Source of the DNA: Haplodiscus bocki
Taxonomy: Eukaryota
NCBI GenBank assembly: GCA_965655095.1
Contig: OZ296650.1
Location: 3,162,001 to 3,226,000 of the forward strand
Reading direction: 5' to 3'
Length of the DNA stretch: 64,000 nucleotides
A program made the translations under genes and the position numbers. Below, in pieces: positions 28,005 to 64,000 of the stretch. The stretch's first letter is position 1; the number at the start of each line of letters is the position of its first letter. A model generated the notes under the pieces. That model was not told where the DNA came from. It saw only the letters and a program-made list of their open reading frames with translations, and searched no databases.

Positions 28005-28102
28005 AAAGTCGTACTTTAGGAGAAAGCTGCCCAAAAACTTATGGATTAGTTTGAGATAATTGTTTTACTTGCACACAAACTTCCTTGCCTTGACAGCCAT
28101 AC

Positions 28103-28249: not shown

Positions 28250-28581
28250 TTATCTATTTTGCAGTTGAGATGATTTGTTGCTAATCACTTGTCTGTGTCT
28301 GTTTAATTCATTAGTTTGATGGGATTGACTTTCACTGAACCTGATTTGATGGACTTTGATTTTGGAAGCACTAGAAAGAGTCCATTTAAAAAAGCGCCGT
28401 TAATTTTGGACAATAGAAATCAGCTAACTTTCAAGTTTTTTCGGGAAAAAAATATAATCATACGTTAAATGACGAATTTTGACATTGTTGATTGAAGCAC
28501 TCTTGTTACTGTATCCCCGTATTCGGGGATGATACCTGAAGCTGCAGAAACCAACGTTTTTCACAGTGCTTCCACATCATT

Positions 28582-36655: not shown

Positions 36656-36693
36656 GCCTTGGTTTTGCTCCGTTATCTGCGCAAAACCAAGGC
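36656..36693. promoter_or_regulatory. 13-bp inverted repeat, 12-nt spacer (A2 copy)
   Basis: GCCTTGGTTTTGC tccgttatctgc GCAAAACCAAGGC. Confidence 0.7.
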
Positions 36694-36890
36694 CCACATT
36701 GCATGTATTTTTCTGGATACTTTTTTTTCGAATTAATTAGATGCTACCGTTAATTGAACAGTTTGAAAGCCGAGCAAAACGATGTCATTTTTTACGTTGG
36801 TTCTATAATGGCGCCTACTCTTTACATTGTATTAACTATTAAAGATGAGTTATTGATAAACTTTTGAGCGAAGTTTGTTGTGAAAGAGCA

Positions 36891-39800: not shown

Positions 39801-42800
39801 AATTTTTGGCGTACACTGAAAGCTAACAAGGTTGCTGCACCTTTGTTGGAGTCACCTGAGACCTTAATAGAAAAAATTCTACGAGGCTACTGGAGTTTTT
39901 TAATCTACCGAGGAACTAACTCTAAGAAAGTGTCGACTGTAAAGTGGCACTATCTCAGTAATTTAACCGGTCAAGGAGTTTTCATTTGTGACAAGCATGA
40001 TGTTCCTTTAACAAGGGACTTCCAACGTAGCAACTACTTCTGTCGATGTGGAAGGTCATCATTCCTCAGATGTGCCTACTCAAAGTGCAACAGTTGTGTG
40101 TGTAAGAAACACTTCGACGAGGGAATGAAACATCCGAACTTACGAGTTTTAGTTGGACCTATAGCAAAACAAAAATTAGCGCCTGAAAAACCAAACGCTG
40201 AAGCTGCAATCAATGGTGCACTGTGTGAACTGAATTCCAACATAGCTAGTTTATGTGAGCAGGACAGAAGCGTTGTTGAACCAGATTTATCCATCAACTG
40301 TTCAAGTCAAAACTCAAGTTCGTCGTTAGCTTCTTTTTTTGCAACAACATGAACGCAAACTCGATCAGCGAAAGTGAATTAGTGATGAATAAATTGAACG
40401 TGTGTTCGGGTGAAAGGGCCATTGTTGCTGTACAAGAGGCTGTCAGTGAGGAAAATTACAATATTCCTCTCCACATACTGTTGAATTCTCGATGCAACTT
40501 ACTGTACAGGAAAAAAAGTCATCCCATTAACCTAACCGTTAAGGAGAAACGTTTCATGGAAAACATTACAGCTTCCTCGACATCATCAACGCCTTTGCTT
40601 CAACCGGAAGGACTGCTTTTTCCTTCTGTTTTCTGGTCCCAAAATTACGATGGCAGCATTGAAGGAGCAATTCCAATATCCCTGTTCCAATCCGAAAAAT
40701 ACAACAAACAAGTGGGGTTTGCAGGTTTAGAGAACATGCTGCGAACTCGCATCACTGATGGGTCGCTTTTAACCTCCAGTCACGCGTCATATCTTCAGTT
40801 CGTTTTTGACTGTCTTTTAAACTTACAATTGAGTAAAACTGATATTCGGATTGTGTTGAACAGAGGCTGGCAAGAATTGGGCAGTGCGCCTTCTAATTAT
40901 CAGTACTTTTCCGATGAAACGTTCAAGTTCGATTGTGCAGAATCCCGGAAAAATGTCTGCGAAGTAGCAGCACTCATTAGAGATGAAAACCCCACTTATT
41001 TTGTTACATACACATGTGGGCAATCTACTCACCCCGGCTTGCGGAAAATTTTCCAGGCTATTGACAAACTTTACCCGCCCGATATTACATCGAAGGAACT
41101 GAGATTATCTGTAATACAAAGTGAATTAATGCCTATGCTTAGATGTTGGCATCGCGCCTCACTGTATGTAATGCAATGGTTGAAGTGTTCGGCCGAGCAA
41201 CCTTTGGGACCAATTTCTCACTTATGGATGAGATACGAGTGGCAAGATGAAACTTCGGCCTTTCCACACATCCATGCACTAGTGTGTACCGGAGAAAACA
41301 AGTTTGGTCCGGAAGTTCAATCCCGAGTCTGCTGTTCGAAAGAAACATTCATGGGCGCCTTGAGCAAATGTTGTCCAGCATTATGGGATAGAGAACGGTT
41401 CCGGTTGGGAGAACTTTTCCAAAAATACCAACGGCACGATTGTGGCAAGGGAAAAAATAGATGTAAAAAGAAAATTGATTGGTCGGGAAAGCCAATGTGT
41501 AGGGTACCTAAATATCCTGCATCAGTTGGGTTCTCTTACAAGGAAATACAACCTAATTACTCCAAAGAAACTTGGGATCTGCTGAGAAGCATGAAATTGT
41601 CCTATATTGACCCTAACTCTTCAACAGACAAAGTTGAAGAAGAACTGAGAGCTGGAAAACATCACTACCCTGCTGCTTACAATGAACACTTGTCACCAAC
41701 AAATGCAGCTTTTTTTGCTTTCACCGAAAGCAGTACGAACGTCCAAATTTGTGACGACTAAATGTGTTCACGATACGTTGCAAAGTATGCTGCCGGTGTG
41801 GAAGGTCGGGCGTTCACAAAGATATTAGCCTCTGCTGGTGAGAATGAAGTGAAAGTGCAAACGGAACCTATTGTGAATGAAAAAATAGCCGGTGTCCAAT
41901 CCAGCGTAACCAAAAAACGTCAGAATGATGATAAACGCAAATCTGTAACAGGAAGAATTGTTAGCATTACTGAATGCTTGTGGTGGGCTTTGCAGTTGCC
42001 GTACGTTTGCACAAACGTAGATTTCATTCATGTACCAACAGTTCCCAAAGAATTCAGATCAGGAATAGTGATAGAAAAATATACTGCGAGCACCATGAAC
42101 TTCAGTGCTGTTTTTGCCGAAGCTGTTCGAATTCGGAAAAACGTCCTGAAGCTTCCAAAACATCGACAATTAACAAAAAATCAAGAATTGTTGTTGGCAG
42201 ATGTAGAAGCGAGTTCGATTACGCCTGACAAAGTGACCATTTTTGGGTTGAGACCACCGGAGCTTCTCTTTGTCAGCAGTTTGAAAAGTTATTTCGTTGG
42301 TTCGTTAGACTCAAAAACAACATTTCGAAAGGGAAAAGTAGTCATGAGATTTTGTTGAGCCGTGCATCGTGTAATGACTTTTGGGTTGATTGCCTCGGAT
42401 ACGTCATCAAGATACGCCCACCCGCTATCTTCGATTTTCTTGATTTCTGTGCAACAAGAAGTGATAAGCCGAGGGACGAATTTTTGAAAGAGGAGTGCCG
42501 CAAACACATTGTCCCCAAATTGCAAGGAACCAACAGTTGCCCCAGACTAGTAGCGTACAATCTTTGTTTCTCAGATCAAAAAGCCATAGTGGTTTTCACA
42601 AATAATCTGCCCAGTAGTCCAACAAAGTTCTTGTTGCACTTTGTGCTAACTTTTGGTTCGTTTGACACCGAACTGGACATTCTCTCTGTTTCCTCTTTCA
42701 GGGAAGCTTTTGTAGCTGCCAAACTGGTCGAGCGTAACAACATTACTGGAGCAGTCGTCCTTCAACTAGCTCGCCGGTACCTACTGCAACAGCTCCGCTT

Positions 42801-44979
42801 TGTGCCAGGATCCTCTAAACTCATTGACAAGTATTTGTTGATGGCAAATAGTGTTCTAGGAGAGGCACTGTTAGAAAACAATTTGTATTTTGCATCCGGG
42901 GTACCAGCTGTTTTGGATCGCACTATCTCTGCCGACTCCGAAGAAAATGTTGCTGTAGATTTGACAATGAACAAGAGTAGATTGGTAGAGTTCTTACACA
43001 CATGTCAAATGGGACTTCCAAGCGAAGAAAGTATGATAGACGCTTCCCTAACTGCACCCGTTGTTTGGAAACCGGACTTTGGTAGACATCCTGGCCAGAC
43101 AGTGAAGTCGTACTGTGAACAGAGTGAAATTTTGAAACATTTAGTTGAAATGGTGGACTTGTACAGAGGAGGAACACAAAATTTCGTCAGACATCAAATC
43201 ATTGCAGGGGCACCAGGAACGGGAAAAACGTTCATCATGCTGAGAGGTCTGAGTTATGCAATATGTCAAGGACTCAATTGCATGGTAACTTCGCTGGCGG
43301 CCGAACGTTCGGCTGCTTTAGGTGGGAAGCATCTGAACGCTCTCATTCCTTTCCCGGTGGAAAAAAATGGAACTGTTAATTCTTTGTCTCGAGTAGCTTT
43401 GTCCAGCTTGCAGAAATCACAGGACAAAAGTCGGTTTCTCCAGAATTTGGATGTATTGTTCGTTGAAGAAATTTCGATGATCTCATGTGAACTTTGGGCT
43501 GCCACGGACCACGTTTTCCAAATCATTTGCTCGAACTACGTGCCATTTGCTGGGAAACTAATCATTGCAACAGGAGACTTTTTATAACTTCCTCCACCAA
43601 AAGGAAGTTGTCTGATCAGTTCTTCATTCCCTTTAACGACTTTTCATTTTAGTTTCCTCCAGCACTTTGTGCGTATGCAAAACGAAGCAGGTCAGAAATT
43701 TTTGTCACTCATGTCAACTTTTCCCAGAACACCTCCCATCGGAAAGCAAATTTGGAATTTGATTGAGCGAAATTGCAATTTCGTAGAAAGTTGGGATGAC
43801 GTACCAAATGATACAATTAGAATTTTTGCTACTCGCAAAGCAGAAAGATATGCGACATTAAAGAAAATTTGTCCAGTGAAAGACAGTGGTTCCCAGTTCC
43901 ATGAAAGTTCATCGACAAATGATATGTGTGTGTCAAGTACGGACAACTGGATAGAAGCTTCTGGAGCGGTGACAAAGTTTTTAAACAGGAAATGTTTGGA
44001 GCCACAATCATTGTTTCTGTTCCCTGGAGCAATTCTCCGACTCACCGCTAACAAGCCAAATGTGATGGCTTTCCAAGGACAACTCTGTGTTTTGGTTTCC
44101 CTGGACTCATTGGCTGACAACGGAACAGTAACTGTTGCCTTGGCACCTGCTGGTTGCCGATCCATTCCACCACTCTCTGTAATTCGAAGTACCTGGAGAT
44201 GTATTGTCCTTGCAAAAGAAGTTGGAGTGAACATTCGTCTAAACCACAGAACTATTTGTCGCAGAATCCAATTCCCCCTCAAATTGTACGTGGCGTCAAT
44301 TATTCATAAAACTATGGGCGAAACACTCCCAACAGTTGCCACGCAGATTGTTGGAGCCCAAGAGTTTTCACTTTGGTTGCCAGAGCAACTATACGTAGTA
44401 ATGAGTCGTGTTCGATCACTGGCGGACATCACTTTCGTGGGATCGAAGCAGTCGAACGAAGGAGCCATTCTGAGTTTGCTGTGTAAAAAGTCACAGTGGT
44501 CGGAGCTGACTTCCGAAATCCTCCAGAAGTGTTCTTCCCGTGACCCAACGATCTTCCATGGTGCTACAAACCCTTTTCCATCAACCATCAGTATACCGCA
44601 GGAGAATGTTGGCTACTGTTACCTTATTCAGAGCGTCCCGCAAAACAACTTGTTATATATTGGTTCAACAATGTGCCTCAATCGACGAATTCGTGAACAT
44701 AATGTTGGCTTGGGAGCATCATTCACACAGGATCCCTCTCGAAGACCTTGGGTTTTGTGTGCTTACGTGACTGGTTTTCTTGCAAACAGCTCAACGGAGA
44801 GAATAAGGTTTTTTGAAAAACGGTGGCTTGAGGCAGTTACTAAAGTGCTTAACTTGAGTAAGAAGAACATCTCCCTCCCGAATGCATTGTCAACAGCAGA
44901 AAACTTAATCATAAATTGGCCTCATAAAGAAGATGTCTTGAAATTGGTAATTTGCTGTAATCAGCCCATAATACTTTAG
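36891..44979 (+). pseudogene. Disrupted polyprotein, copy A2
   Basis: Seven ORF fragments collinear with A1. Stops at 38112, 38652, 41759 and 43585; frameshifts near 40340 and 42296. Confidence 0.9.
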
Positions 44980-45890
44980 TACCTTAGAGAAACACTGACA
45001 AACTACTTATCAAATGCTTCGCCGACTGTGAAATGTGACGAAGTGAATGCTTTCTCACAAAAAAACCTGAAGTTCATTATTTATTCAACACATGAAATGA
45101 ATTTTTAAACGTCCAACGTATATCTTCAATGTCCCCGGTGGTTTCCAGAGGTGCACGTATAATGTTTTTAGTATGTGTGTTTTTGCTTTTTGCTGTGTTT
45201 AAAGAACGCTGAATTTGTTATTTCTAAATGTTTTTTCTTTTGCTATTTACAACAATTCAATTGTTCGATTTGTGACGTCTTTGAGAGTAATCTACAGAAT
45301 ATTTAGCCAACGTACTGTTTTCCATAGAGTTCAACGTTTAAGTAAGTTTAATACAAAACTTTCTCGACAATATTCATTTGCGGAAAAAAGTTTGCTGCAC
45401 TTTCAACATGCTTTTTGGAACATTGAAATGGGTACATTAGGTGTTCTTAAACTGCCCCTTAACAAAGAATGTTCCTGATTGCCCACTGTTAGTAAAGTTG
45501 ATTGATTAGAAAATTTAACTTTTCGCACTGCATTTTTAACGTATGCTTATCGAACACTTCCTTTTTTGTTTGTCCTAAGAACGATATACTTCCAGATAGT
45601 GTATGATAAAAGCATTGTACTTCTTCCTGTTTCGACCGCAAGGTGAAACATTTAGTGAAACCTTAGTGAAACTTCTATACCAAAAAGCAGACACACTCAA
45701 ATGAGCAAATATTTTTTTAGAGCTTTTGGAACAATGATATTTTCAGCTCTTGCGTTTTATACTCCAATTTAATGCTAATGACACTTATCTTCTGTGTTCC
45801 ATCATAGTGTACCTATGATGTTGGAATCATTAATTGTCGTTTTTTTGTCGTCCCCCCTTGTCTTTGTTTTTCAACGTTCTGCAGATCTAA

Positions 45891-46657
45891 ATGAGACATC
45901 TTATCATAGTTGATTCTCTTGGCAGAAGACTTGTCAGGAAGCACGAAAACCTGGAAGTGAAGTTTTTCCCTGGTGCCACGGCATCTTGCCGTCCGGTAAT
46001 TGACTGTTTAAGAAACCTAACAACGTTTTATGAATCAATCATTCTGTTCATCGGCGCAAATGCACTTACAAGCAGGGGCAGACAGCGGGGAAAAACTCCT
46101 GAGCAAGTGAGTGATTTGTTCAACAGAATGTCAAGTTGGTCGCGACTGAAAACATTTTCAGGAAAATACTCATTGCAACATCAGGGTGCATTGTGCATGA
46201 ATTGATAAGCAGGTGATATTTCCCTGCGAAAAAAGTTTTCCTCTTAAAAAGCTGAGCGTCAAATGAAACTGAAAGTATTTTCATTTTTTTCCTCCAAAAT
46301 TTGAAGAAAGTTCGACAAAATCAAACGAAGTGCATGTTCACCTCAAAAAATTTTGTTAAATCTTAGGTGGTTCGAGACATTATGTACCTCGTGCGTCTGG
46401 CCACTCCAATGTGTTACACAGTATACTGTCTGGCTCTTGTCATGAGATCCAAACGTTGCCTCCTAGATATCAAAAGGGTGAACGATGGACTCAGAAACTC
46501 TTCGGGTCAATACAATTTTTTGTCGGTGGCTAGCAAAATGAGCTCCGAGAGGAATTTGATGGATGGCGTGCATTTATCTCGTCACGGTGTTTCCAACTTG
46601 ATGTACATTCTAAGAAAAAGAGTTTTGGGTACTGTACCACATTTTTCTGACCTGTGA
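45891..46657 (+). CDS. Two-exon SGNH-like hydrolase, copy A2 (exons 45891-46106, 46367-46657)
   Basis: IIVDSLG, FPGA, IGANA and DGVHLS; GT-AG intron retained and frame open. Confidence 0.8.
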
Positions 46658-47749
46658 TAAATACAAGTAACAAAGATTTCGTGAATTAGTTGTTGATTAA
46701 TGAACGCAGTCTCTAACATGGTACCCTGTGTTAGATTTTTTGGTAATGGCGTGTTTGTTTTCTTTCTTCGTAGTTTCTTTAAAATATCAAAGTTGACTGA
46801 AAAGTTTTCATAATGCATACAACTGTGCATACAATTGGAATCGACTGTAAAGTGACCTGAGTTTTTATTTTTTTGTAACTTCTCAACAAAATTCAATGAT
46901 TTTTTGAGTAAATGTCATTTTAATCCGGTAAACCTTTGAATTTGGTATGTTGCGTTGTTTTTTATGTATGCTAGTTTCCTTCTCATACGTTTCTACATAA
47001 AGTGAATACTGCTAAACCCATGGATACTGCTAAACCCTTGAATGTTGCTTTTTGTTCGGCGTTGTTTTTATTTCTGTTAATTTTTTGTACCTAATTGAAA
47101 TTCTCATTGAAATGGAACATTCCGCAGATTACTTCCCCTGAAATATCGTTTTATGTAGCTTCGATTCAACTTCATTTGTTTAAGTCAAAAAACTGTCGAT
47201 TGTTTCATTTCTTTCAAGTTGCTATCATTGTCTGTGCAATGAATCAATCATTTTTCAAAAGACTTTAGTTTCATGTTAGACTGGTTACCACAAAGAACTT
47301 CAATTTTATCCTGAATTAACACGTTTTCAATACGTATACTCTTTTCATTTGCATTTGCAGCCATGATTGTTCAGTGAAAGTTCGTTGACGAATGTAATTA
47401 AGACCAAACATACCGCTCATTTACTATTGACTGAACTTTCAGACCGTTGAAACGTGAAAAAAAAGTTGAAAAAAGTCAGTTCTACCTTTTGCGTGGCATC
47501 ATGGTAAAAAATCATGTAAATTTTTTCAATGTAAAAAAAGAGCAACAACTTTAATATCGAACCTTTTAATGTATACTAACAATTCTCACTGAAACGTGGA
47601 AAATTAATGAAGTTGTATTTGATCATGTTCAACTTCATCTTCTTTGTTTTGTTTATTGAGAACACTTAGTTCTGCGTCCTGAATAGGTTAAAAAAATGTC
47701 ATTGTGTAAACCGCGTTGTGTAAGATGGTGCTTGAAGGGAATGTTCCAG

Positions 47750-48763
47750 ATGATGACCACCCGTGTAAATACGGCCCAAATAACTGCTCCCAATTTCTTG
47801 CGAAACAGTGAGAACACATATATCTGAGGTGTTGTTTTGGTTTTTAAAAAATTTGATCGTCCCCTACAGTTATTTCGACCGCAAACTGTAAAAGCTAAAA
47901 GATTGACCCCTGACACAAACTATGATCGCCTAATCATCATCGGCGAAATCCAGACGCGAGAATGCTTTGCAATAATAGCAGATTCTGCGCAGAAAAGTTC
48001 ACTCCTTTTTGCTGACCGAAAATTAACTATTGGTGCCATCGTTGATGTGAAAGAAGCTATTTTTTCCAACTCCTGCCTTGGTAACGATCGAACCAATCCA
48101 ATTTTCAACGTGTCTCTTCCGTTAGAGGTAGTTACCGACGACCTGCCAATGGAGCCTGTTCCTATCGATTTGAATCCCTCGACGGGTGCAATGTTCCACT
48201 TCTGTCTCCCACATCGACCCCTTTCGTTTCTGCACGCAATTCCTGTGTTTCCGACTTGTTCAGGTTTTTTGTGCGACAGAAGAAATAGAAAAAACGAAAG
48301 AATTTGTGCATGTTTGCAAAAATCGACTTTGTCGGCATGGGTAATGTCAGCAAGGGTAATTAGTCGGGACATATTGAACGAAGACGATGATCCTCTAACA
48401 GGGGATATTCTGCAAAGTTTGTCTTTGACCAAACTTTTTTGTGAGGAAGCTATCATTAGATCGGCATACACATCAATTGACAGGGGACGTTTGAGAGAAG
48501 CTGTCATGCGTGTTGCTAACCATGTTAATAACAATGGTGGATGGAGAGTGTCAGGCTTCTAAAAAACTGCTTTGACAGAAGAAAACATTGCCCAAAATGT
48601 TCAAAGGGTAAGAATTTGTCGGATCACTCCAGCGACTGAGATCCCTGTGAACTTGAAGTACAATGTAATTCCCTGGACTGGAGACGATACAAACCAGCCA
48701 CCACGCTTTTTTCACGCTAACGCAAGTTTGCCGGCAAGTGACAATGCAAACAACATGAGATGA
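47750..48763 (+). pseudogene. ORF3 copy A2 with two premature stops
   Basis: CGA>TGA near 47826 and TAC>TAA at 48560-48562 relative to A1. Confidence 0.82.
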
Positions 48764-50121
48764 ACACTTCGTTGAACCAACAAAACTCAAACAAATCTTA
48801 TATCAATCACTGTTGTGATAGTTTTTACTACAGTTACAAATTAATTACAGGCTCAACACAGGTATTAGAGACAATTAAAACAAGGTGCAATGAATCATTC
48901 AGCAAGCTACCGAAAGTTGTTTGCATGCAACATCGACTGTCACAAGGCATTCGACCGTATGGTGTTTGCCCAAAATTAAAAGATCAATTGTCGTTTAAGA
49001 AAAAGAGAGTTGTCATGAAGTGCATTTTTTCTACGTGCATTCAATTGAATTTTCAAGGGTTGCTACCATTCATTTGCAGTTAAACTGAGATTTCACTTTG
49101 TATTACTAGTGAACTTTATTTAGCACAGTTTAAGTTGTTTTCTGTTGTTGGTACGTATAATGTTCATTAAAAATTCAATGGGTCATTCAGAAAAAAGTTT
49201 GTGCAGCTCCCTGTAACTAGTCACCTCAAATCTAATTCAATGTCCGCTGAGACAAAAAAAAGTTGCTACAGTTATGTATAATTATAACATAATCTTCATA
49301 ATTTCTATTACAAATAATTTGGAATTGAAAGAAAATAACTGCAGCGAGTTTCCTTGAATTGGCCCAAGTTAAAACTTGTGTTACCGACAGTTTCCCAGCC
49401 TAATAGTTGAGTATGAAATTTCAGCAAAGCTTCATTCCCGCCTTCAAAAAGTTGACGGATTTCAGATGAAGTAGAGGAGAAACTGACTTTTTACCTGTTT
49501 TTTTTTTCCTCCACAAAAAATCGTCATAACCGTCATTATTTTCGGCAATTTGACCAAAAATGTTTTTTTTTGTCGGAAATTTTTTTTTCATTTGACACAG
49601 GTCCCGTCACGTTGTGACGAAAGCTCACATCACTTTTTTAACATCAACGTGGGAGAAATGACAAATTGGTCGATTTTGGCCTATTTTTGACAACTTTGAA
49701 ATGTCATATCTCCTAGGGCAAAAGGCCCTGGCCAAAAACTTTTGGCATGTAGGTAGTCCACAACAATTGTGCTTCACACAAAAAATTTGAGTCCAATGCT
49801 ATGGTTAAAGTGTGGAGATTTTGCGAAAAATACATCGAAACCTGCCAAAAAACAGGATCATTGCGTCATATCTCCCCAACGAAAAAAAAGAAAATGATGT
49901 AAGTGCCAAAAATCTTCATACATCGGCAGACTCTATCCACATGCAAAGTTTGATCGAAATCGTATGGTTAGGTTTCGAGATCGTCTCCTTTTCGGGGGGG
50001 TCCGGTTAGGTGTAAACTTGATTTCTGAAGCTCGGCACAGGGCCCCTCCCCCGCCTCGCAAACGGTTTTGTGGGGCTAAAAAGCGTGACCACCCAGTGGA
50101 GGCACCGGTGAAAATCACCAG

Positions 50122-51170
50122 GTGGCGGTCACTGGATATACACCTCTGAAACAGGAAAAAAAACTGCTAGTCTTTTCCTCGAACACAGTATTGATTTTTG
50201 CAAACGCATGTTTTATGCATTGGAATTGAGCCTGTCAAATCTTCGTTGATGTCAAAAGGACATCGAGGATGAAACTTGCGAAAGTTTTGGCCCCGTTGTT
50301 TCTCCGTATCGCTTCGCTAATTTACGAAACAACGGGGCGGGGCAATTAACAATTTGACTTGTGAGAAATTTTCCCTCACTTTCGGACCAAATTAAATACT
50401 AATTTTTCCCCGGAAAAACTTCAAAACTTCAACCCACGAAAGATGCTAAATTTCAGAAAGCTACGCAGTAAGAGAAGTCTGAAGAAAAACTGGAGAAAGA
50501 AATGCCAGATTTGAATTCCTGAATGAAAACTGGGTTTTTGGAAATTTTCAATTTTTTTTCTGACTTTTTCGTCATAACCGTCATTTTTTTCGGCAAAATG
50601 GCCAAAATTTTTTTATCGTCCAAAAATTGTCTTTCAAGTTATGGAGTCAATTTCACAATGGAGCCGCTGCAGAACGCAATCTATGTGCATCAAAGTGGGA
50701 GATATGACGAAATGATCGATTTTCGGCATTTTTTTCCAACTTTGATCCGTCACATCTCAACACCTATGACGAGTTGGTAGAAAATTTTTTGCATGCGTGT
50801 AGCCCTTAGTTATTCTGCTTCACACGAAAAGTTTCGGCCAAATGCATGTGGTTACTTCTAGGGCTGTCGGTAAAAAACTGCAAAATGAGGCCAAAAAACA
50901 GAATCATCCCGTCATAATTCCTCAACCATTTTTGCTAGAATGATCTAACTTGCACCATTGTTCTTAGAATTGAAAGTTATGCCCGCATGCAAAGTTTGAT
51001 CCAAATCGTATGGGTGGGAGCTGAGATCGCTATATTCCTATACCGTATTTGCATAGAGTTATTTCTTATATTTTAACGCTCGGCAAAGGGGCCCCTCCCC
51101 CGCCTCGCAAGGACTAATGTGGGGCGCAATCCCCTGACCACCCAGTGGAGGCGACGGCAAAATTTACTAG
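50122..51170 (+). mobile_element. Non-autonomous mini-element C (1,049 bp)
   Basis: Unique ~430-bp 5' part starting GTGGCGG. The 3' ~600 bp closely match the B1 3' end (32820-33421) and end AATTTACTAG. No credible ORF. Confidence 0.85.
50290..50338. repeat. Perfect 13-bp inverted repeat in element C, 23-nt spacer
   Basis: GCCCCGTTGTTTC (50290-50302) and GAAACAACGGGGC (50326-50338). Confidence 0.8.
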
Positions 51171-54100
51171 AAGGCGTGAGGTTTAAATCGGTGTTTCTTT
51201 CGTGTTCAGATTTTTTTCTGCGACAAACGAGTGTAGTCCTTTCATTGTGCGTCAGTCAACTTGAAGTAGTGTGTTGTCGGTTTTTGTGACGAAGACAAAA
51301 AATTCCCTATTAGGTGCCAAATATTGAAGCTGTAATCGTTAATCCTGATTCCAAGTTGTTGTTTTAACTTCTCTGCCACCGGCATGAGGGGTAATTCTAT
51401 TTTTCTGTAGAAGCAAGAAGCACTGGCTTTGTCGATGCCGTTCGGAAAAAGTGCAGTTAGCTGTTGAATACGAAGGGCGCCGAAGTCTGCAGAGCAATGA
51501 ACAGTTGTTATCTTGGAACAAAATATGTTTTTTTTTGTTAATATTTAAATTTAAAAGTTGCTTTTGAACCTTTTCTCCAGCTAGCAGAATTCTTCGTTAT
51601 TGTCCAATTCATTTCTATAATTTATTCGTAATTAAAATAAGAAATGTGAATAAAGGTTTGTTTTAAACTCGAAGTTTTTATCTAAACTTTTGCTGTTTCT
51701 TTTGGAGCTGTTTCCAGATAAATCTTTTTTTGTCTCTCATTGCTGTCTTTGTTTCTTTAAACAAAGAAAGAAGTTGATTGGTGTTCAATTACGCACTCCA
51801 AAGGTATGTTTGGCTTCTGCCTTGGTGGAAGAAACAAAGGTTTTGTTGCTTCCAATGTCCTCTGCAGGGATAATCATGACAACGGAACTTTGCAACGGGA
51901 TACTAATATTTAGTGAACAAATATCAGAAAGTTGGAAGGGGTGGCCTCCAGGAACCTTACGCGTTGTTTGAACCTCAAAAATCACGAGCAAGGTTCTCGA
52001 GTTTCTCATACCTATGAGACTCATTTTCAAGGGTTCCAATGACTGTTATAACTTACATTGGTTTTTTGAAAAATGTGTCTAATTAATATCAACCACCCCT
52101 TCCTCCGCTTTCGAAATTTAATTTCTCAATACTTTTGTTAATGAAATTTTACTGTTCAGACAAAAGAGGCAACGGTATGATGATTTTTTTCTGATCGGCG
52201 CCAAGTGCAATTTTTTTCCGGCCTTCGGTGGTTTTTTTAAAGGAAACGTTGCATTGCGCATCTATTACGTAATTTATATTTTTTTGTTTCGTTTTTTATT
52301 GGATTTCACGATTGATCACAATCATTTCTTCATTTAAGGCTTCCTGCGGTGTAGCTGTATCTTTTTGTTCGAATCAACCGTTTCTTGACGGCAATGGTCC
52401 GGTTTCCGTTTGTAGTCGTATGAAGTTTTACTGACCAATATTGTTGTTAAATCAATACTTGATTAGACAATCAGTGATAGCTACTGCACGCTTCATCGTG
52501 GATTGATGTTTTCCCGTTGATTCGCTTTCTTCGTTTGTTTACAAGGTTGTCCGAGCTACTTTTCTCGAAATAATTTCGTTTTCTATTCATGGCTTTCGTT
52601 TGAAATGACTGTCCTGCTTTTACGGTCAACATATTTGAAAAACGCACCCAACCAATTTTTTTCCGAAAAGCTGTTTTCGTATAAATAATTGCTTTTTTTC
52701 AAGACTGTACTGACAATTAAATATTTCTAATGTTTTCGCGGAATTATTAAGTTTCGATACTCCGCGTTGAGCAGTTAACGGAGTATTTCTTCAGGTATAT
52801 AATTCCATCAATTGTTCAACTTTTTACCGAATTTCAAATTCGTCCTTCCGTTGCTTCATTTTTTTGCTGATCTTAAATTATTGAATTTCCTGAAGCAATT
52901 TAGATTTTTTAATGTTGATATTATTATTTTATTCACAATGTTTTTCTTCCAATTCCCATCCTGATACTCTGATCCCCCGGAGTCATTTGCATTTTTGCTG
53001 GACGGATGGCAATTCACTTCCTCAACCTTATGCTAGATCGACTGTTGACATTTGACATATGCTCCTCCGAAGACATATATAAGCCCTCGTTGAAGTTTGT
53101 AAAGTGATTGATTAAAAATTAAAACGTATTCCTATTTTAACTTTATAAATATCTGTTTAATATCCGTAACGTTTTCTCACGTGTAATTGCTGGCTGTGGA
53201 AGGTTTCTTTTGGGGAAGTTTTGTTTCATTAATTGTGAATTTTCTCTCTTAAGCTAGCTTCGACGTTTAAAACTCAATGCTTTCCAATCTTGAGGTCCAC
53301 GTTGACGCTCCTTTTTTCCTGCAGTAAAGATTTAAGGAATTGACTCTACTGCCAGAAATGCAAAAATTCAAATAAGCTTTACTTGTATTAAATCAGCCGA
53401 AAGATGATCTTTAATTGTCAATTGACGGAATCAAGACACAATAAGAAACAACGGCGTGATAGCCATATTGATCAAAGACTTTAACCGATTCAGTTTTTCA
53501 AGTTCAAGATGGAAACTATATCACAACAATTAACTGTGTCTGAATGATGCTAGGCAGTTGGAATTGCACAAAACTATGGCACTTTTGAACTTCCTTGATC
53601 CAATTTTTTTATGTTTTCATCAAGGTTTTTCCTATTTTGAGTCTTGAAACTTTCCCTGTATTCTATCAGTGTGCCTGTTCAACTATCAACGTTGACGAAA
53701 CGACATGAAAAAGACAGCGAATGGAGTTTGTAGAATTTGTTCCTAAGCTCTTGATTTCAAGAAGGTTTCCAACGTTGACGTGTTATAAAAAATTTACTGA
53801 ATTCAATCCTTTGACGCCTAGAAACTTTCAGTAGTGGTTTACGTTGTAGTTGACTGAAATGAGCCCTGAATATTTGATTCTGAAATCTTGTGAGAGAGAA
53901 AAGAAGAATTCGACGAAGAATGATGGAAATACAGAGCTTCCAATTGTTTCTCCCAACTGAAACAAAATTATTGTAGCAACAATTCTCTCTACCCCCTCAT
54001 TTTTGTGAAATTGTTATTGAATGCGTTTTTTAGACTACAAAACTCATGAGCTTCTTCGCATGTTAAATCTGGTCTCTGTTCGTCATGTATAAGTCATTTT

Positions 54101-54419
54101 TTTCGAAATATGGACAGACCTTTTCAATTTCACATCTGTGAAAAAGAGGTACATGTTTTATAGGTGAAACAAAGTTACTGATTTCTTTCAGGCCCTTGAA
54201 TACGAGAACTTTTTACCTGCAAAAACTAAATTAAATTGCTGCCTGGTTTACACCAGTCGAAAGCACTAAGAACCTCTCAAAAACTTTGTGTGGCCTCACT
54301 TTTGCCCAATTTCAGTTACTTGCTGGAAATTTTTGCCAGAATTTTTCAATTTTCCTAGTTGTTTGTGAAAATGAAAAATTACGACGTGTCTGATTGAAGT
54401 CAATAAAACTGCTGAAGAA

Positions 54420-54457
54420 GCCTTGGTTTTGCTCCATTCCGTTCGCAAAACCAAGGC
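54420..54457. promoter_or_regulatory. 13-bp inverted repeat, 12-nt spacer (B2 copy)
   Basis: GCCTTGGTTTTGC tccattccgttc GCAAAACCAAGGC. Confidence 0.7.
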
Positions 54458-54722
54458 GCCTGGTTTATGAATGGTTGGAAACGAATTATGATTTTTTAAC
54501 GTACTTGCTTATCTTTTCCGTTGCATCGACCCTGAGATTTAACTAGACAGGCAACAATTTGTAATCGAACCTCAAAAGATTTAGCTCATACGACAAGTTG
54601 ATATATTTACCTGCTATACGAATTTCCTTGCTTTTTATTCAGCGTGTGGTTGTATTGTAACTTGTTCTTTCATATAGTTATGATCCCACTGAAATATGAA
54701 ATAATGTCTGTTGTGTTTGACA

Positions 54723-57700
54723 ATGTCAAAACAAAACAGCAAAGGAAACTTAAAGCGTCGACGTTGTACTTCCTGTGGACAGTTTGTTGGAGAACATCAT
54801 GTGTGTGCAAAATCAATTGAGGTTGAACTTCAGGCCAATCAGTCTTTAGGAATTTTATACAAAATTCCCGATGCTTCAGTTTCTGTGTCACCTGCCGCGA
54901 GAACGGAGATACACAGCTCGCTGAACACTTTGGGGTTGATTGACTTTTTAAAGCCTATAAAAACAGCTATTGGAAATGATACAGTTATCTGCTCCACGCA
55001 GCCAGTCCGGGTAACAGCAGTGCTTGGGGACGGTAATTGCCTTTTTTCCTCTCTGGCAGTTGCTCTCGGGCTGTCACATGAATGTGGCCCAATCATACGA
55101 AACATTATTGTCAGCCACATGAATTTAATCAGTTTCCCCCCTAATAGCCTGCAAACATCTGTTTACTCCGACGACTTTCCCAACCAACATCATGTTTTGA
55201 ATTGTACTTCAGTCGATGAGTACCTCCGCGAATCTAGAATGGCAGAAAATGGTGTTTTTGGAAGCTGTGTTGAAATATATTCATTTTGCCAAATCTTCAA
55301 AGTCGATGTTTTTTTGTACCATGTTCCGTTCCAATCGTGGATGATTTATGAATGTTCGTCCAACGTAAATCGAGAAGGAATTTTCATTCAACAAAACAGG
55401 AATGCAAATCACTTCGACGTGATAACAGAGCTAGTTTCAGTTGGTCCTGAAAGCTCCAGCGTAGCGCAAGTTGGATCAATTGATCGCCCTTTTTCTCAAT
55501 TAAGCGAAAATAATCACTGGACTCAAGCATTGCAGAGCTGCGAAGCAACTGAAACTGAACCAGCTTCGAAAAAAGGAAAAATCCATTCTGATTACACCTG
55601 GGAAGAGCACCCAAAGACTCTCGCAACAAGTCCCTTGAACATTTCAGTATCTACCAATATGAAGAAACTTTCGGCCTTAGAAACATTATCAACAAATTCA
55701 ACGGACCCCCTAAACAATGATTGTTCACAAATGCTGGACGCCCCAAGTTCTGCCTTTTCCCCAACAGATAGTGTTTCAACAAATATGCACCCGAACGGCG
55801 AGTGCCCCAATTCGAGCGGATCTGACTGTTGCGCAAAATGCATGCGCCAGTCAACAGTTCTTTACCCTTTAAAATTGACGAGGAAGAATAAAGTTGATCT
55901 TAAAAACCGTGTGTTTGGAAACAAGCTAACGGGACCCATTGTTGCTTTATGTAAGCTCTGTCTTCTCTATTGCACAACCGAAAATTATGATTGGTACAAT
56001 GCTTGGCCGTCTGTGTTTTTCAGCCTATTGAGTGATCAAGACAGGCCAGTTAGAACCCAAATGGATATTTTGTCTTTGTTACCTTGGGAATTGAGACAGC
56101 AAAAGATGACATCCATGCACTACTTTCCCCTGTGCGTTCAAAGATGTCTAAGTCGGAAACGGATTGCTGGGAAATGTTCCGTTGATGGGACGCTTCGTTT
56201 GCGTCGTTTCCAGAAACTCATGAAAACCTTAAAGCAGACTAACATTGCTGTTGCCCTGGACAATGAACCTTATCCCAACGTCCGCTGCCCATATGGGTGC
56301 TGGTGTTTCATTGAAGAATCAGGTTGGATACCCGCAAATCACTTCATCAACTTTTTTGAAAGAGACTTTACCTCGTTCCAGTCCTCCAGCCTCCTGCATC
56401 TAAGAGGAATTAAGTCCGAATTTTTAACACCATTTGTGTCCCTGCGCCAGTTCCTAGTAGCAACTACAGTGCGAGTTGATGAAAAAGTGGGACTCGTAGT
56501 TCAGACTTGCTCCATGCACTCAAGAGGCTCCAGTGTGCAGTACTTTCATCCGCCATCACATCCTTCGCTGGGGCGATCTACAGTGAATTATGAAGAACGT
56601 CTTAGTGCCATCGCACCCACATTGTCGTTCGTCTCAAGCATCAAAGCCAACTTCGCAAGTCATACATACCAATTGCTAAAAAGTGTTGGGTCTTACAGTG
56701 GAATGAGCACAGTCCGATTGAAGCGGCAAACGCGCTGGGATTTCACTAGTGACATTTTGTACCATGCTGAAGGCGTCGCCTGTCACTTCAGAGAAGACAT
56801 TAAAACAATGGTTGGTGAGTGGGTAAGACAGGGTAAAATCCTTGATGACGTAGCTTCGGGAATGCTGGATTATATACCGAACAAAAAGAAAGTCAACAGT
56901 TGTTTGTCACAGGCCACTTCAATAGACTTACAAACATGCCTCGACCTCACGAAAATAGTGGAGAAGAATGAAAAAGAATATCTGAACAATGTTGAGCTGT
57001 TGAGTTGTTACACTCTCGTTCATGGGAATGATGATTATGGCTGCTCTCCACCTCCTCTAGAAAATAGAGTTGGCATAGTTTCGTGGATTGTGCAGGCTGC
57101 AGCTTGTGTTTCCCCGATGCTTTGCCGTTCCTTAGTGAACTCATCAAATTACAGTGTGACACTTAGGCCTTTGTTCACTTTACTCAGGAAGGTGTTGCTT
57201 GACACCACAAGAATGAATACAGCAAAAGTTTTATGGCTCGTTGAAAAATCCGAACAAGCAGTATCAGCTGTAATTGAACAAAATAACACTGATGACAAAA
57301 CAGAAGGAACAGCTGACTGTTGTTGTTTTGTTGGAGCAAGGTTTCTATCAAAAATTTGTAACACCATGCAACACTTTCCCTTAGACAAACGGAAAAATAT
57401 CGGTTCAGACACCACAGAGCAAGTTTCGTACAACATGACTCATGCCATTTATACGACAGGTTCCCCAAAAAATTTGCGGAACAAGGTTGATCCACCGTTA
57501 ACCCTGATTACTTCCGACAATGAATTTGAATTGATCGCAGTTGGAACGAAGGATGGAAGCAGCAAGGGAGATCCGAGGTGGTTAGTTAGACATGAAGGGA
57601 AGTTTCAAGGGTTCTGGCTCATTGAGAAAAGTACAAAATTTGCCAAAAAAACAGAAGGCTCCCCGACTGTTGCGCTGGAAACTTTCATTCGGGGTTATTG

Positions 57701-60700
57701 GACAATTGCGATTTATCAAATATCGAGAAATGTTGAATTGCTTGATTTGAAATGGAAATTTTTGAGCACTTTGACCGGTCAGGGTATTTTTATTTGTGCA
57801 CATCACACAATTCCTTTAACCAGAGACTTCAGAAAGAGTGGTTTCCAATGTAGATGTCGTCGTGCATCGTTTTTGCGCTGCCCGCATTTGCAATGCTACT
57901 CTTGCGTTTGCAAGCGTCACTTCAATGAAGGTCTACAGCAGCAACACAGACGTATTTTAATTGATTCAGTACCGTTGGAGAAGTTGATTAAAATGAATTC
58001 CCCTTCTGTGGTATCGACTTCATCTTCGTCACGGGAATTTATTGAGCCCAACAGCATGTCTGCATATGAACCGATTCAACCAGATGCGGCTACACAAACG
58101 TTTGAGATTGCATCAAGTAACAGTTCGTCCGTCAGTTTTATTCTTCATCCGGAAAGAAATGACGAAGAATTCGAAGATGACAACTTGAGAATAATGGCTA
58201 CATTAAAAACCAACTCAGATGAAAAACTGATTTCCGTGGATCTTGAACGAAAAGAAGATGCCTTCAAACTACCGCTCCATATTCTTTTAAACTCACAATG
58301 CAATCTTCTTTATCGACGTAACGGGAATCCAATCAGCCTTTCTCTGAAAGATAAACGTTTCCTGGAAAATATTTCAGCTGTTTCGACGTCTGCATTACCG
58401 CTCATTCAACCCGAAGCTCTTCTTTTTCCATCGATTTTTTGGTGTCAAGCTAGCAGCGGCAGTTTTCCAGGAGCAATACCAACGGCTTTATACAATTCAT
58501 CCAAGTACAACAAACAGCTGGGTTTCGCTGGTTTGGATGACATGCTTCGAACTCGAATCAAAGACGGCTCTCTTTTGACATCTTGCAATCCTACTTATTT
58601 GCAGTATGTGTTTGATTGCCTCTTGAACATGCAGCTTCATAAAAGTGACATTAGGATAATACTAAATCGAGGATGGCAAGAAGTTAATTCGGTTCCTCAT
58701 AATTGCTCTTTTCTTTCGACTCAAACTTTCAAGTTTGATTGTGCGGAAAGTCGAAAAAATGTCTGCGAACTTGCGGCTTTAATTAGAGACAAAAATCCAA
58801 CCTACTTTGTGACATACACTTGTAGTCAATCGACCCATCCGGGGATTCGGAAAATCTTTGAAGCACTGCATGAAATGTATCCCGCAGAAACCACTCCAAA
58901 GGAAGTACTTTCAGCAGCAATTCAAGCTGAACTCATGCCCATGCTCAGGTCTTGGCACCGCGCCTCTCAATATGTAATGGAATGGGTGAAAAATTCACCA
59001 GAAAAACCACTTGGTCCTGTGTCTCATATTTGGATGAGGTACGAATGGCAAGAAGAGACAGCTGGCTTTCCACACTTGCATGCTATATTGTGCACACCAG
59101 AAGATAAATTTAGTGATGATGTACGATCTCGAGTTTGCTGTTCAAAACAAACGTTTTTGGGTGGCTTAGAAGTCAGTTTCCCCGAATTGAACGCAGTCGA
59201 ACGTTTCCAACTGGGTGAACTTTACCAAAAGTATCAAACCCATAACTGTTCGAAAGGCCGTAAACGTTGCCATAAGAAGACAGATAGGCTAGACAAACCA
59301 ATTTGTCGTGTACCAAAATATCCTCCTTCAAATTGTTTTTCCTTCAAGGAAATTCCGGTGAACTTTTCTTGCGAAACAATGGAACTTCTGCGAGGAATTG
59401 GTTTAGCAGACATAGATGAAAACTCGCTGTTCCCAAAAGTGAAAGATCCCTTAACAGCCGGAAAACATCATTATCCCACTGTCTCTAACGAACATTATTC
59501 ACCAACGAACCCTGCTCTTTTTGCTTTGACACAATCCAGCACCAATGTTCAAATATGTGATGACTACATGGCCCCCCGCTACGTTGCAAAATATGCAGCC
59601 GGCGTTGAATCTCGAGCAGTTGCCAAAATTGTCGCTGGTGAAACAGAAAATAGTGTCAAAGTCTTGACAGAACCAATCGAACATGAAAAAATAGCTGGGG
59701 TTCAGGCTTCGCTAAAGAAATTGAGAGGCAACGAAAAACAAAAATCTGTAAGTGGTCGTGTTGTCAGCATAACTGAGTGTCTCTGGTGGTCCTTACAGCT
59801 TCCGTATGTTTGTACAAATGTCGATTTCGTTCACGTGCCAACTGTTCCCAAGGAATATCGATCTGGAATTGTCACTGAAAAACGCTCTAGCAGTAATATT
59901 AAGTTGGGCGCCACGTTTATGGAAGGAATTCGTGTTCGGAAACACGTTTTACAACTCCCAAAGCACAGGCAGTTCACTAGAACACAAAGTTTCCTTCTCG
60001 CAGATGTTGAAAACAGCTGTATTTCGCCAGACAAAGTCACAGTTTTTGGACTCCGCCCACCTGAACTTTTGTTTGTCTCGAAGTTAAAAAATTACTACAG
60101 TTGGTTTGTTCGTTTTAAACCGCAAACAAAAAAATCCATCAGCAATCATGAAGGGTTCTTGAATAAAAGCCTCCGCAGAAGTTGTTGAGTTGATGCATTG
60201 GGGTATTTGGTTAAACTACGCCCTTGTTCTGTGGACGCTTTTGTAAATTTCTGTCGTGCAAACGGTACCGATGGACGGGATAGGATTCTGAAACGCGAAA
60301 TGAGAATACACATTGTTCCGTTGCTTGTGACAGGAAAAGCGTCACAATTTGTTGCTCAGTGGAAGCATTTGTCAGAAGAAGATGCCGTAGTTGTTTTCAG
60401 TAACATTTTGCCGAATAACCCAACTAAATTTCTACTACATGTGCTCTTGACTAATGGAGAATTCGACACAGAGTTGGACATTCTGAACGTGCAATCTTTC
60501 AAAGAAGCTTTCACTACAGCTAAAATTATTTCAAGTTGTAACATAAACGCCAAGACCGTGCAAAATTTAACACGAAACTATTTGCTGGAACAACTGCGTT
60601 TTGTACCTGGGTCCTCGAAACTAATTGACAAATACCTTTTAATGGCTCACAGTGTCCTTTCGGAGGCTCTGATAGTAAACAGCCTTTATTTCGCCGCTGC

Positions 60701-62780
60701 TCTACCACCTGTGCTTGACAGAAGTGTCATTGAAGAATACGAAGAAACACTAGCAGTGCAAATCAGTATGGAAAAATGCAAAATGGTAGCTTTTCTTCAC
60801 ACTTGTCAGAAACAATTACCTACTGAGCAGGCCATGCTAGATGCAACCATCACCTACCCTTTACCTTGGAAACCAGTCGTTCAGAAAAGCCCGGATCAAG
60901 GTCAAAACTCTTTTGTGGAACAGAAACGTGTATTAGACCAACTGTTGAATTCCATCGACATTTTTAAAGAAGGACGTTGCACTTTCATCAGGCATCAAAT
61001 TGTCTTTGGACCTCCAGGAAGTGGGAAAACTTTCGTTGTGCTAAAATCGCTTGCGTATGCTTTATGCCAGGGTCTCAACTGTGTAGTAACATCTTTGGCT
61101 GCTGAAAGATCTGCAGCTTTGGCTGGCAGACATCTGAATGCCCTGATCCCATTTCCAGTGGAAAAACACGCTTCTGCAGAATCGCTCTCGAGAAAAGCCC
61201 TGTCCAACTTACAACGGTCTCCTTTTAAGAGCCGCTTTCTGCAAAATCTACACGTTCTTTTCGTCGAAGAATTGTCAATGATTTCTAGCGAACTTTGGGC
61301 TGCAACGGATTATGTGCTTTAGGTTATCACAGCAAATTATGTTCCATTCGGTGGTAAACTTGTTATTGCAACCGGAGATTTCTTCCAACTTCCTCCACCG
61401 TCAGGATCTTGTTTAATGAGTTCTTCTTTTCCTCTCACAACTTTCACTTTTCTCAAACTGGAAAATTTCGTTCGAATGCAAAACAAAAATGGCCAAGAAC
61501 TGTTGTCCTTAATGTCAGCGACTCCAAAAACTGACGGCAATGCGAGGCGTATCTGGGAAATTATCCATAAAGTTTGCAACTTTGTCCATTCATGGAAAGA
61601 CGTGCCGAATGATAGAATTCGAATTTTTGCCACTCGACAAGCAGAACGTAAAGCAACTGAAAACAAAATAATTGATGTTAAAAACAGCGGGACGCAATTT
61701 TATCAAAATGCGGCAAATGATAAAATGTGCGTTTCAAGTACTGACAACTGGACCGAAGCGTCGCCAACTACATCAAAGTTTCTCAACAAAAAGTGTCTTG
61801 AACCCCAGTCGTTGTTTCTGTACCCCGGTGCCATCTTACGACTAACAGTGAACATGCCATCCCTATCCGCGTATCAGGGTCAACTCTGTGTTCTACTTTC
61901 TTTAGATACAATTGAGAATGGCACTGTGACAATTGCTGTAGCACCAGCTGGTTGCCGAAGTATTCCACCGCTTTCTGTGATCAAAAACAGATGGCGTTGT
62001 GTCGTTATCGGCAGAGAAACTGGTGTTGCCTACCGATTAAACCACAAAACTATTTGCAGACGAATCCAATTTCCACTAAATTTATTTGTAGCATCAACCA
62101 TTCATAAGACAATGGGTGAAACGCTTCCGATGGTCGCAACCCAAATAGTTGGATCAAAAGATTTCGCTCTATGGCTTCCCGAGCAACTGTATGTTGTAAT
62201 GAGTCGAGTAAGAAGTTTAAATCAGGTGACGTTTGTTGGATGGAAGGAAGCTAACAAACGAGCAGTCTTGGATTTAGTCTGCAAAAAATCGCAATGGGCT
62301 GAACTGACGAATGAAATTTTGACTAAAAGTTCCGCTTGTGACCCTACAATTCATCATGCAAGAGCATCTCCTTTTCCCCCCTCAGTGAAAGAGCTACCCG
62401 TTCAGAATCTGGGGTTCTGTTACTTGCTCCAAAGTGAACCACAGAAGCACCTTCTGTACATTGGCTCCACTATGTCGTTAGTGCGTCGTTTGAGAGAGCA
62501 CAATGCAGGACTGGGTTCCGCCTTCACCAAAGTACAAAATCGCTTGCCCTGGATAGTGTGTGCTTATGTTACTGGTTTCAATTGGAATAATGCTTCAGAA
62601 AGAATCCGAGCATTCGAGAAGGAGTGGTTGAATGCGGCATCACACTTCGTCAACGCAAAAAAGAAAAATGTGTCACTTTCCACGGCTATCAATTTGGGGG
62701 AAATTGTCGCAAAAATTTGGCTACACGAAGAAGATAATTTGAAGCTAATAGTGTGCTGCAGGTCATCACTTGTATCTTGA
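54723..62780 (+). pseudogene. Polyprotein copy B2 with two in-frame nonsense mutations
   Basis: TGG>TGA at 60186-60188 and CAG>TAG at 61320-61322; otherwise collinear with B1. Confidence 0.9.
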
Positions 62781-64000
62781 GAAATAGTACTTTAGATAAT
62801 GTTGCTCACAAACTTGTGGATTGGTTTCGGATAATTGTTTTACTTGCACACAAACTACCTTGCCTTGACACCCATACGCATCGACTGCATAGTGATGCAA
62901 TGGTGAGCTTCGCTTTATGTTATGCTGCAACCGCAGCGGCTGCAGATTCATGTACCAAGTAGAACGTGCAGCAACATCAACCTTTTCGCTGGAAAAGATA
63001 ATGCTACGACTGCATAGTGTTGCATTATCTATTTTGCAGTTTAGATGATTTGTTGCTAGTTACTTGTCTGATTGTACGTACAGCCTGCTGCAGGACGTTA
63101 AAATGATGAATTTATCGCCCTACGGTTAACCTTCACATGATGTGTTTCTGCTTTCCTTTGTGTTTTTGTTACTGCTTCTCAAAGAATTCCTCTCGAAAAG
63201 TGATGGATGTTTTTAGAAATCTTCGTCACTTATAGTTAGTACGTTAATTGTCGTAGTAAGGATCATAAACTGATGCTTCATACTTTTGGATAACATCGAA
63301 ATGGATATGTTTTTCTGTGTATCTATAGTTTCGGTTTTCCGGTTTCCCATATGATAAGTTTCTGAATATATTATTGAAGTTATTCGTTTTTCTTTAGCAT
63401 GAAATTCTGGTCATTGCGCTTTAGATGGATTTATTAGACAGAGCCCGCAAATTAATTCAATTACGTTCCCGAAGATTGAGGAGACCATGTTGCTCACTAA
63501 AACAATTGAAAAAGCTTCTGAAATGTTCATCATTGTGAATGGAAAACCTTTTCATAAGTTTTCTTGAACATGAATTTCAATAACCATTAAGTATCTTCGA
63601 TTTAATGACAGATAACTAATCTTTTGCGTACTTAGGCTATGTTTTTCAAGGTTTGGACCAATGGAAACTAAGACTTTAAGAACATTCAGTATCTCCAGTT
63701 CAAAAACATTGACAATCTGCAACCTCAACTACAAAACCAAATCAAGTTTTTTGTTTATTTATGAGTGTGCGGAAATTTGTATAACCTATTCATTGGTACA
63801 GAGACATCCGCCCACACACTGGCCATTTACACTGTTACTTTCAATTGGCCATTCGAAACCAAAATCAAAGTTTTGAACTGTTGAAGAGACGAAAGTGTTT
63901 TACAGTTGTACATGAAACCTCTGGTTTTTAGGGCATATCGATTGATTAGTTTTTCTGTAAGTTTTAAGTGCTTGTAAAGTTTGGCTATTGAAAGTGCGAC

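Follow-up and report, generated by a model that had tools for sequence, protein, structure and literature searches.

The question raised by this locus is how a unit of about 1 kb came to lie precisely between two much larger repeats, in an array where repeats of the same two kinds also follow one another directly. The first-pass annotation of this DNA had taken the small unit, here called C, as the filled half of a filled-site/empty-site pair, and thus as evidence of insertion specific to the junction of repeat units. We examined the boundaries of C, its composition, its relatives elsewhere and the proteins of the large units, and we consider it probable that C is a non-autonomous member of a Helitron-like clade, which is moved in trans and placed exactly in the joints between resident units.

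Self-comparison of the 64-kb stretch of DNA that was analysed (the window) gave a one-way, head-to-tail chain of large repeats, which are named A1, B1, A2, C and B2 in their order along the + strand (Table 1). Within the window, A1 and A2 are 90-93% identical and B1 and B2 84-93%, and A and B are about 66% identical to each other. The 17-mer GACCACCCAGTGGAGGC is found four times, always on the + strand, at 16350, 33387, 50087 and 51136 (chance expectation, none), so that its copies are spaced 17037, 16700 and 1049 apart. A2 carries a private deletion at 46815-46822, where about 255 bp are gone that are present in A1 (12862-13117) and in the A copies of two other loci, L016 and L017. Rfam and tRNA scans of the whole 64-kb window returned no matches.

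Table 1. Units, joints and parts of C in the window, and C-family copies at other loci (↓ in the text and here marks the joint between two units).
Feature	Position	Strand	Size	Description
A1	before window start to 16356	+		Large unit
B1	16357..33393	+	17.0 kb (17,037 bp)	Helitron-like element, intact 2,689-aa ORF
A2	33394..50093	+	16.7 kb (16,700 bp)	Helitron-like element upstream of C; coding frame broken
B2	51143..64000	+		Downstream of C, extends past window edge; 89.6% identical to B1
A1-B1 joint, direct	16350..16366	+		Empty site of the first-pass annotation; same direct joint type in L016 and L002
B1-A2 joint, direct	33387..33403	+		Empty counterpart of the filled L017 joint
A2-C left joint	50087..50103	+		GACCACC↓CAGTGGAGGC
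C-B2 right joint	51136..51152	+		GACCACCCAGTGGAGGC copy and joint alignment
Mini-element C	50094..51142	+	1,049 bp	Non-coding; boundary GACCACC↓CAG
5' terminal hairpin of C	50094..50134	+	41 nt	From base 1; absent from A and B
5' terminal block	50094..50127	+		Common to A and B: CAGTGGAGGC, then ..CGG, ACYAG, ..GGCG (joint alignments)
Perfect 13-23-13 inverted repeat	50290..50338	+		In C 5' half, offset about +197 (repeat search)
B-type 3' module	50552..51142	+		91.8% identical to B1 32803-33421; 65-67% to A 3' ends
Conserved 3' terminal block	51082..51142	+		GGGGCCCC, CGCCTCGC, putative GGGG..CCCC stem-loop, final GACCACC; invariant alignment columns
C-family copy, L013	9594-10642		1,049 bp	96.9% to C; upstream D mini-element, downstream another unit
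C-family copy, L014				88.8% to C; upstream B-like element; copy truncated at 3' end
C-family copy, L017	5482-6529		1,048 bp	85.7% to C; upstream B, downstream A
C-family copy, L009 (first)				83.4% to C; upstream B, downstream X
C-family copy, L009 (second)				86.4% to C; upstream X, downstream D
C-family copy, L006				84.6% to C; upstream B, downstream 4.1-kb unit starting TAG

The interval from A2 to B2 holds 1,049 bases more than the A1-B1 joint, with zero target duplication and zero loss. The directness of the A1-B1 joint, which had been read from the window by eye of a model, is borne out by the GACCACCCAGTGGAGGC spacing and by the joint alignment, and C does lie exactly between A2 and B2 with neither neighbour altered. 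Its edges had been placed at ACCAG↓AAGGCG (50122-51170), and these had to be moved. Because the two joints share 18 identical and 18 similar bases, along which the insert can slide, the window alone leaves the boundary unfixed. It was set from ten B copies of the same assembly (L003-L012), 99.2-100% identical over their last 8 kb, which had been fetched via the B1 ORF at 30780-31784 and its protein cluster of 140 sequences on long ENA contigs. All ten copies agree through GACCACC and then diverge, either into CAGTGGAGGC... (A, B and C-like units) or into unrelated units beginning TAG..., with at least seven kinds of downstream neighbour among the ten. Since near-identical B copies with unlike neighbours part exactly there, the unit boundary is GACCACC↓YAG, 28 nt to the left of the edge first proposed, and C keeps its length under the correction. 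The 18 nt before and including ACYAG (..CGG...ACYAG) track the downstream unit and never the upstream unit, and the same 18-mer precedes a C-type start both where A2 lies upstream, as in the window, and where a B copy does, as in L006. A CTRR-like ACYAG was considered as the 3' end of the upstream unit and rejected, as it sits 28 nt inside the next unit.

Every joint inspected falls at CCACC↓YAG, and the joints are seamless and without target-site duplication in the window and in 15 loci. GACCACC itself occurs eight times on the + strand of the window, and only four of the eight are joints, namely those at unit ends. At the joint at 50089-50099 and at the other three, CCAC-CCA-GTGG makes a small palindrome centred on the presumed cut site; this palindrome is present only where the following unit begins CAGTGG. 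One B-B joint (L003 12625-12640) has lost about 30 nt including the GACCACC↓CAGTGGAGGC core, and is a dead joint between otherwise intact units.

C is non-coding and is without coding constraint. Its longest ORF is 85 aa, the amino-acid identity of ORFs between copies is about the value expected from neutral DNA at that identity, and an exact look-up of three ORFs in or overlapping C in a protein collection gave no match. A coding 3' module was rejected, the B-type and A-type modules being 32-39% identical in amino acids and about 66% in DNA, as for neutral sequence. The B-type character claimed for the last 600 bp or so of C was upheld, with 619 nt (bases 431-1049 by the old boundaries of C) underlying the match to the 3' end of B1; against the sampled B copies, the module reaches no more than 90-92% identity. 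As to the 5' part, which had been described as unrelated to A and B except for a terminal GGCG, the first half of the statement stands, bases 1-430 (old boundaries) matching nothing else in the window, but the second does not, as the corrected boundary gives C a first stretch of about 34 nt in common with A and B. Where the upstream unit differs, this 5' terminal block still goes with the downstream one.

Several structural features were found within C. The hairpin begins at the corrected first base. Folded as single-strand DNA, the first 60 nt (50094-50153) reach -13.1 kcal/mol (z = -4.24), and one of 200 shuffles folds as well; the same stretches of B1 and A2 give -2.5 and -1.9 kcal/mol, which is not significant. 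Its CAGTGG...CACTG is kept in C-like units and in the mini-elements of another type, X. The inverted repeat is the sole island of the C 5' half that is common to X and to a further mini-element type, D, and it has a 13-12-13 counterpart in A at 2680-2717. Near the other end, the GGGG..CCCC stem stops 8 nt from the 3' end of C, its predicted fold being no better than those of shuffles (z = -1.37). There is also subterminal complementarity of 6-7 nt, between GGAGGCG about 5 nt from the 5' end and CGCCTC about 45 nt from the 3' end.

Relatives of C were sought with the help of an ORF annotated within a C-like unit. The long loci all belong to a single assembly, of which one contig is 100% identical to window positions 30349-51761; the loci are therefore from the same sample as the window. 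Six further C-family copies with other units at their flanks were obtained (Table 1), 83-97% identical to C, five of them intact at 1,042-1,049 bp. With C itself, the seven copies have seven neighbour combinations in one orientation and one register, and all intact ends abut their neighbours at GACCACC↓CAG, the exception being the broken 3' end in L014. The intact ends thus all lie in unit joints and none at random host sites. These copies also bear on the proposal that C is a one-off remnant, formed in place by internal deletion of a full-length array member. The B-type 3' 600 nt would fit such an origin, but A and B hold no counterpart of the 5' 430 nt, other loci have units of the same architecture and length, and reads show the 5' part in multiple copies. 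We regard an in-place deletion as highly improbable and reject it, given the unmatched 5' part and the further copies of the same length.

The closest second copy, in L013, differs from C by 3%, and none among the sampled loci is more than 99% identical, so that no very recent jump of C is shown. The sequencing runs that contain C are from corals and reef metagenomes. In short-read contigs of the same coral, the 5' half of C is present at very high word depth, with 2-3% of sites differing from C, and L013 shares four of the six listed short-read variants of this half; contigs from a second coral and from a reef metagenome have C-type starts after other 3' ends. A C-specific 24-mer had no match in the JGI metagenome contigs. 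A joint of A2 and B2 that skips C was absent from the contigs of four sequencing runs, which are unitigs of 60-300 nt and too short to bridge it.

The comparison of A1-B1 with A2-C-B2 as an empty and a filled site holds in part: the insert is exact, but the pair is an old one and perhaps did not arise by simple duplication, A1 and A2 being 91.7% identical over the last 3 kb and B1 and B2 86.5% identical over the first 4.5 kb. Besides A1-B1, direct A-B joints are present in L016, whose A is 97.8% identical to A1 (last 3 kb) and whose B is 95.4% identical to B1 (first 4.5 kb), and in L002, a contig of a JGI coral metagenome. In the JGI metagenome, the joint motif was found in just two short coral contigs, one A-B and one B-A, both direct. 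These contigs (L001 with B-A and L002 with A-B, from Ga0126343) hold units 85-90% identical to those of the window, and since they come from another coral sample, the pairing of A and B is old or widespread.

A much younger and better filled/empty pair is formed by L017 and the direct B1-A2 joint of the window. In L017, a 1,048-bp C-like unit separates an upstream B copy, with 99.6% identity to B1, from a downstream A copy, with 97.5% identity to A2; the two loci are identical over the 70 nt upstream and have the same 5' start of A. Beyond this A copy, the place that C takes in the window is occupied in L017 by an X mini-element. From the filled and empty joints it follows that each unit acts as a module of its own, which can be gained or lost at a single nucleotide. 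Together with the seven C-family copies in joints, these pairs sustain the proposal of junction-specific insertion.

A different course of events would be that C arrived within a read-through composite, for example C with B2 or A2 with C, in which case there would be no single-unit filled/empty pair. Bypass of the element end and tandem Helitrons are documented (PMC4067079, PMC5148889), and the identity of only 86.5% between B2 and B1 over the first 4.5 kb is in keeping with a composite. The B1-A2 pair also recurs in L017 (1-23462 against window 27900-50093) at 98-99.6% identity, flanked there by other units, which would fit joint movement of B and A as a single read-through composite. For C, however, the seven different neighbour pairs of its family argue that it is not tied to B2 or to A2, and a composite would still need to land in a joint, so that targeting holds either way. 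We think it quite unlikely that C came in this manner.

It may also be asked whether insertion is needed at all, as recombination or gene conversion in the conserved joint core could rearrange units and bring C into place via exchanges between arrays. A, B, C, X and D share an identical core of 18 nt and a conserved 3' block of about 60 nt, the arrays are long and one-directional, and copies of the A2 lineage that are 98% identical nevertheless have quite different downstream neighbours, all of which would suit recombination. On the other hand, joints with the families of TAG type are exact to the base although they have only about 8 nt in common, and 8 nt in heterologous joints is too little for homologous recombination. 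The presence of a single 1-kb unit between intact neighbours, as in L017 compared with the window, would require two exchanges in the same core, and ten near-identical B copies suggest copying rather than exchange. We judge recombination to be an unlikely source of the arrangement. Both it and the composite are possible explanations, and both still need the joint as the site of action.

C belongs to a wider class of small units. L009 and L013 contain trains of 1,043-1,057-bp units, whose 5' ends fall into at least three types (C, X and D), and the types differ in their 3' modules, which are B-type in C, A-type in X and of its own type in D. The 5' halves of C, X and D align only in the terminal 34-41 nt or so and in one island of about 50 nt, which is the inverted repeat, at the same offset in all three (+196 to +249 in the C family and D). 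Across L009 12648-21011, L013 2895-10642 and L007 18921-19970, three unrelated 5' types all measure 1,042-1,057 bp and have a 10-13-bp stem near +197. On these alignments, the mini-elements of about 1.05 kb comprise three candidate cis islands and the 3' module. The earlier claim that C defines the minimal cis requirements holds in part: C is in the smallest class sampled, but the smallest sampled does not prove the minimum. The suggestion that its 5' end came from a third family found no support in an autonomous form, as none of the 17-kb elements among the sampled loci has a C-type start and an autonomous third family did not turn up there; as far as sampled, the 5' half of C therefore belongs to a mini-element lineage.

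Several other families came to light in the same loci. Units of 1,255 bp starting TAGACGTGCACGG form tandem trains (L011 16735-20500; L012 14371-15625) and units of 4.1 kb start TAGCGCTGGAGGC (L006 13690-17815); both follow the same joint rule, and all members of the two families end ...GCCGACCACC. At L013 2880-2910, the sequence ahead of a mini-element train is not element-like and ends in ...CCTCACC. An old D copy with the start CAACGGAGGC follows immediately, and the train may have been founded by insertion into a host site with CACC at its end. The B copies of L003-L012, which end near 12647, have a 336-aa ORF protein (P0003) that is identical in ten of ten; they form a very young and probably active subfamily of autonomous elements, about 94% identical to B1.

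Candidates for the enzyme that moves C were looked for in the large units. In Pfam searches, the B1 ORF matched PIF1 (37.6 bits, cut-off 25.9) and, as a C-terminal domain, GIY-YIG (37 bits, cut-off 22.6), with a weak match to Helitron_like_N of 25.9 bits, under the cut-off of 28.9; the OTU match of the A1 ORF was slightly below the Pfam cut-off. The translation of the B1 ORF contains an HUH motif (HLH) in ...PHLHAIL... and a two-tyrosine motif (YVAKY) in ...RYVAKYAAG..., with the PIF1-type helicase fused C-terminal to the Rep. When the Rep-helicase region was compared with PDB sequences, the best matches were PIF1 chains, and the Helraiser structure was not matched. No tyrosine recombinase domain was found by Pfam in the four largest ORFs of the window. 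Because B1 combines the HUH and two-tyrosine motifs with PIF1 and GIY-YIG, the large units are Helitron-like with an unusual added nuclease; by these features A and B are classed as rolling-circle transposons of the Helitron-like kind, which encode an HUH Rep with its two tyrosines, a PIF1 helicase, a GIY-YIG nuclease and a putative OTU domain. The HUH and two-tyrosine motifs belong to the partner elements and are absent from C. B1 is likely to be the type of C's partner in trans. Mobilisation of C in trans is plausible because C is without coding constraint and has a B-type 3' module.

The following course of events would account for the joints. Units of the clade end ...GACCACC and begin YAG..., and their enzyme would be a fusion of HUH Rep, PIF1 helicase and GIY-YIG nuclease. 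C would retain the cis parts only, that is the 5' hairpin, one inverted repeat and the B-type 3' module of about 600 nt, and would presumably be moved by a B-type enzyme supplied in trans. If an excised circle is the intermediate, its joined ends would read like any joint of the array; as the circle joint and the array joint are then the same in sequence, an enzyme able to cleave the joint of its own ends would cleave a resident one as well. Strand exchange at the resident joint would add one unit, and GIY-YIG may nick the second strand. Each new copy would be placed exactly 3' of the end of a resident unit, with no duplication or loss, and this would give rise to one-way trains. Such a choice of target may be likened to that of HUH enzymes of the IS200/IS605 type, and the outcome would resemble integron cassette arrays. 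A bolder idea, which we put forward tentatively and hold to be doubtful, is that the clade is a eukaryotic cassette system, in which the Rep-helicase-GIY-YIG protein integrates single-stranded or double-stranded circles at a hairpin-defined GACCACC↓YAG, with the mini-elements of about 1.05 kb as minimal cassettes. If that were true, a natural sequence-specific DNA integrase of the HUH class would exist in animals.

The case of C is of use beyond this locus. With a tiny, defined passenger and several filled and empty joints, placement is seen to fall on a single nucleotide of the end of the family itself, and this provides a concrete substrate for the study of target choice by HUH Rep-helicases, with a joint of about 100 nt and a donor of about 1 kb. 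Placement of this kind accounts for how one-way repeat trains of megabase scale can grow in a coral genome, and the corrected element ends are needed by annotation tools.

The usual account of Helitron-like elements has them insert at AT or TT dinucleotides and attributes tandem copies to missed termination. Canonical Helitrons (HLE1) have 5'-TC and CTRR-3' ends and insert between A and T; in contrast, the ends here are YAG... and ...GACCACC. Among bacterial elements, IS200/IS605 and IS91/ISCR use single-strand, hairpin-guided HUH cleavage and insert in a fixed orientation beside a specific short sequence, with no duplication. They differ from the present clade in that they are small and have no helicase fusion, and that the target is a host tetranucleotide and not their own end. 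Integron cassettes form one-way arrays of unrelated cassettes with a conserved core and entry at a defined joint. Integrons are bacterial and work by a tyrosine recombinase that acts at attC/attI, however, and the likeness to the arrays of this clade is in outcome only.

Among described systems, the Helentron/Helitron2 (HLE2) group with its HINE/DINE-1 passengers is one of the most similar. Subterminal repeats, hairpins and TT targets are known from HLE2 elements (PMC3627910, PMC11417382). Like Helentron/HLE2 and HINE/DINE-1, the elements described here have a Rep-helicase partner with an added nuclease and a putative OTU domain (PMC4067079, PMC3627910, PMC11417382), and the stem-loop and short subterminal inverted repeat of Helentron/HLE2 have candidate counterparts here in the GGGG..CCCC stem a few nt from the 3' end and in GGAGGCG/CGCCTC. 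The 5' hairpin of the mini-elements and the lack of target duplication are shared with HINE/DINE-1 and their partners, as is the presence of non-coding passengers that have terminal sequence in common with an autonomous element. Unlike HLE2, the target is not T↓T but the clade's own GACCACC↓YAG joint; unlike Helentron, the nuclease that follows the helicase is GIY-YIG and not an AP endonuclease; and unlike HLE2 passengers, those found here share about 600 nt at the 3' end and only about 34 nt at the 5' end. The HELIANO survey described HelenSM92 of Sphagnum, an HLE2 element with TT sites and with GIY-YIG beside RepHel, the GIY-YIG being reported as a captured domain (PMC11417382). Compared by description only, HelenSM92 is similar in having GIY-YIG beside RepHel, and differs in that no self-targeting arrays are described for it (PMC11417382).

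Tandem or adjacent Helitrons have been described in bat, silkworm, maize, Arabidopsis and Metarhizium, some of them distantly related and lying side by side, and they are explained by missed termination or rolling-circle concatemers, with end bypass and self-insertion documented (PMC4067079, PMC5148889, PMC11934779). The arrays reported here are similar to these in their head-to-tail copies, but they are of mixed families, every joint is at one nucleotide, and single units are added inside existing joints. In the literature searched, we found no account of systematic insertion at an element's own end joint, and insertion exactly at the ends of its own kind appears to be the habit of C's family.
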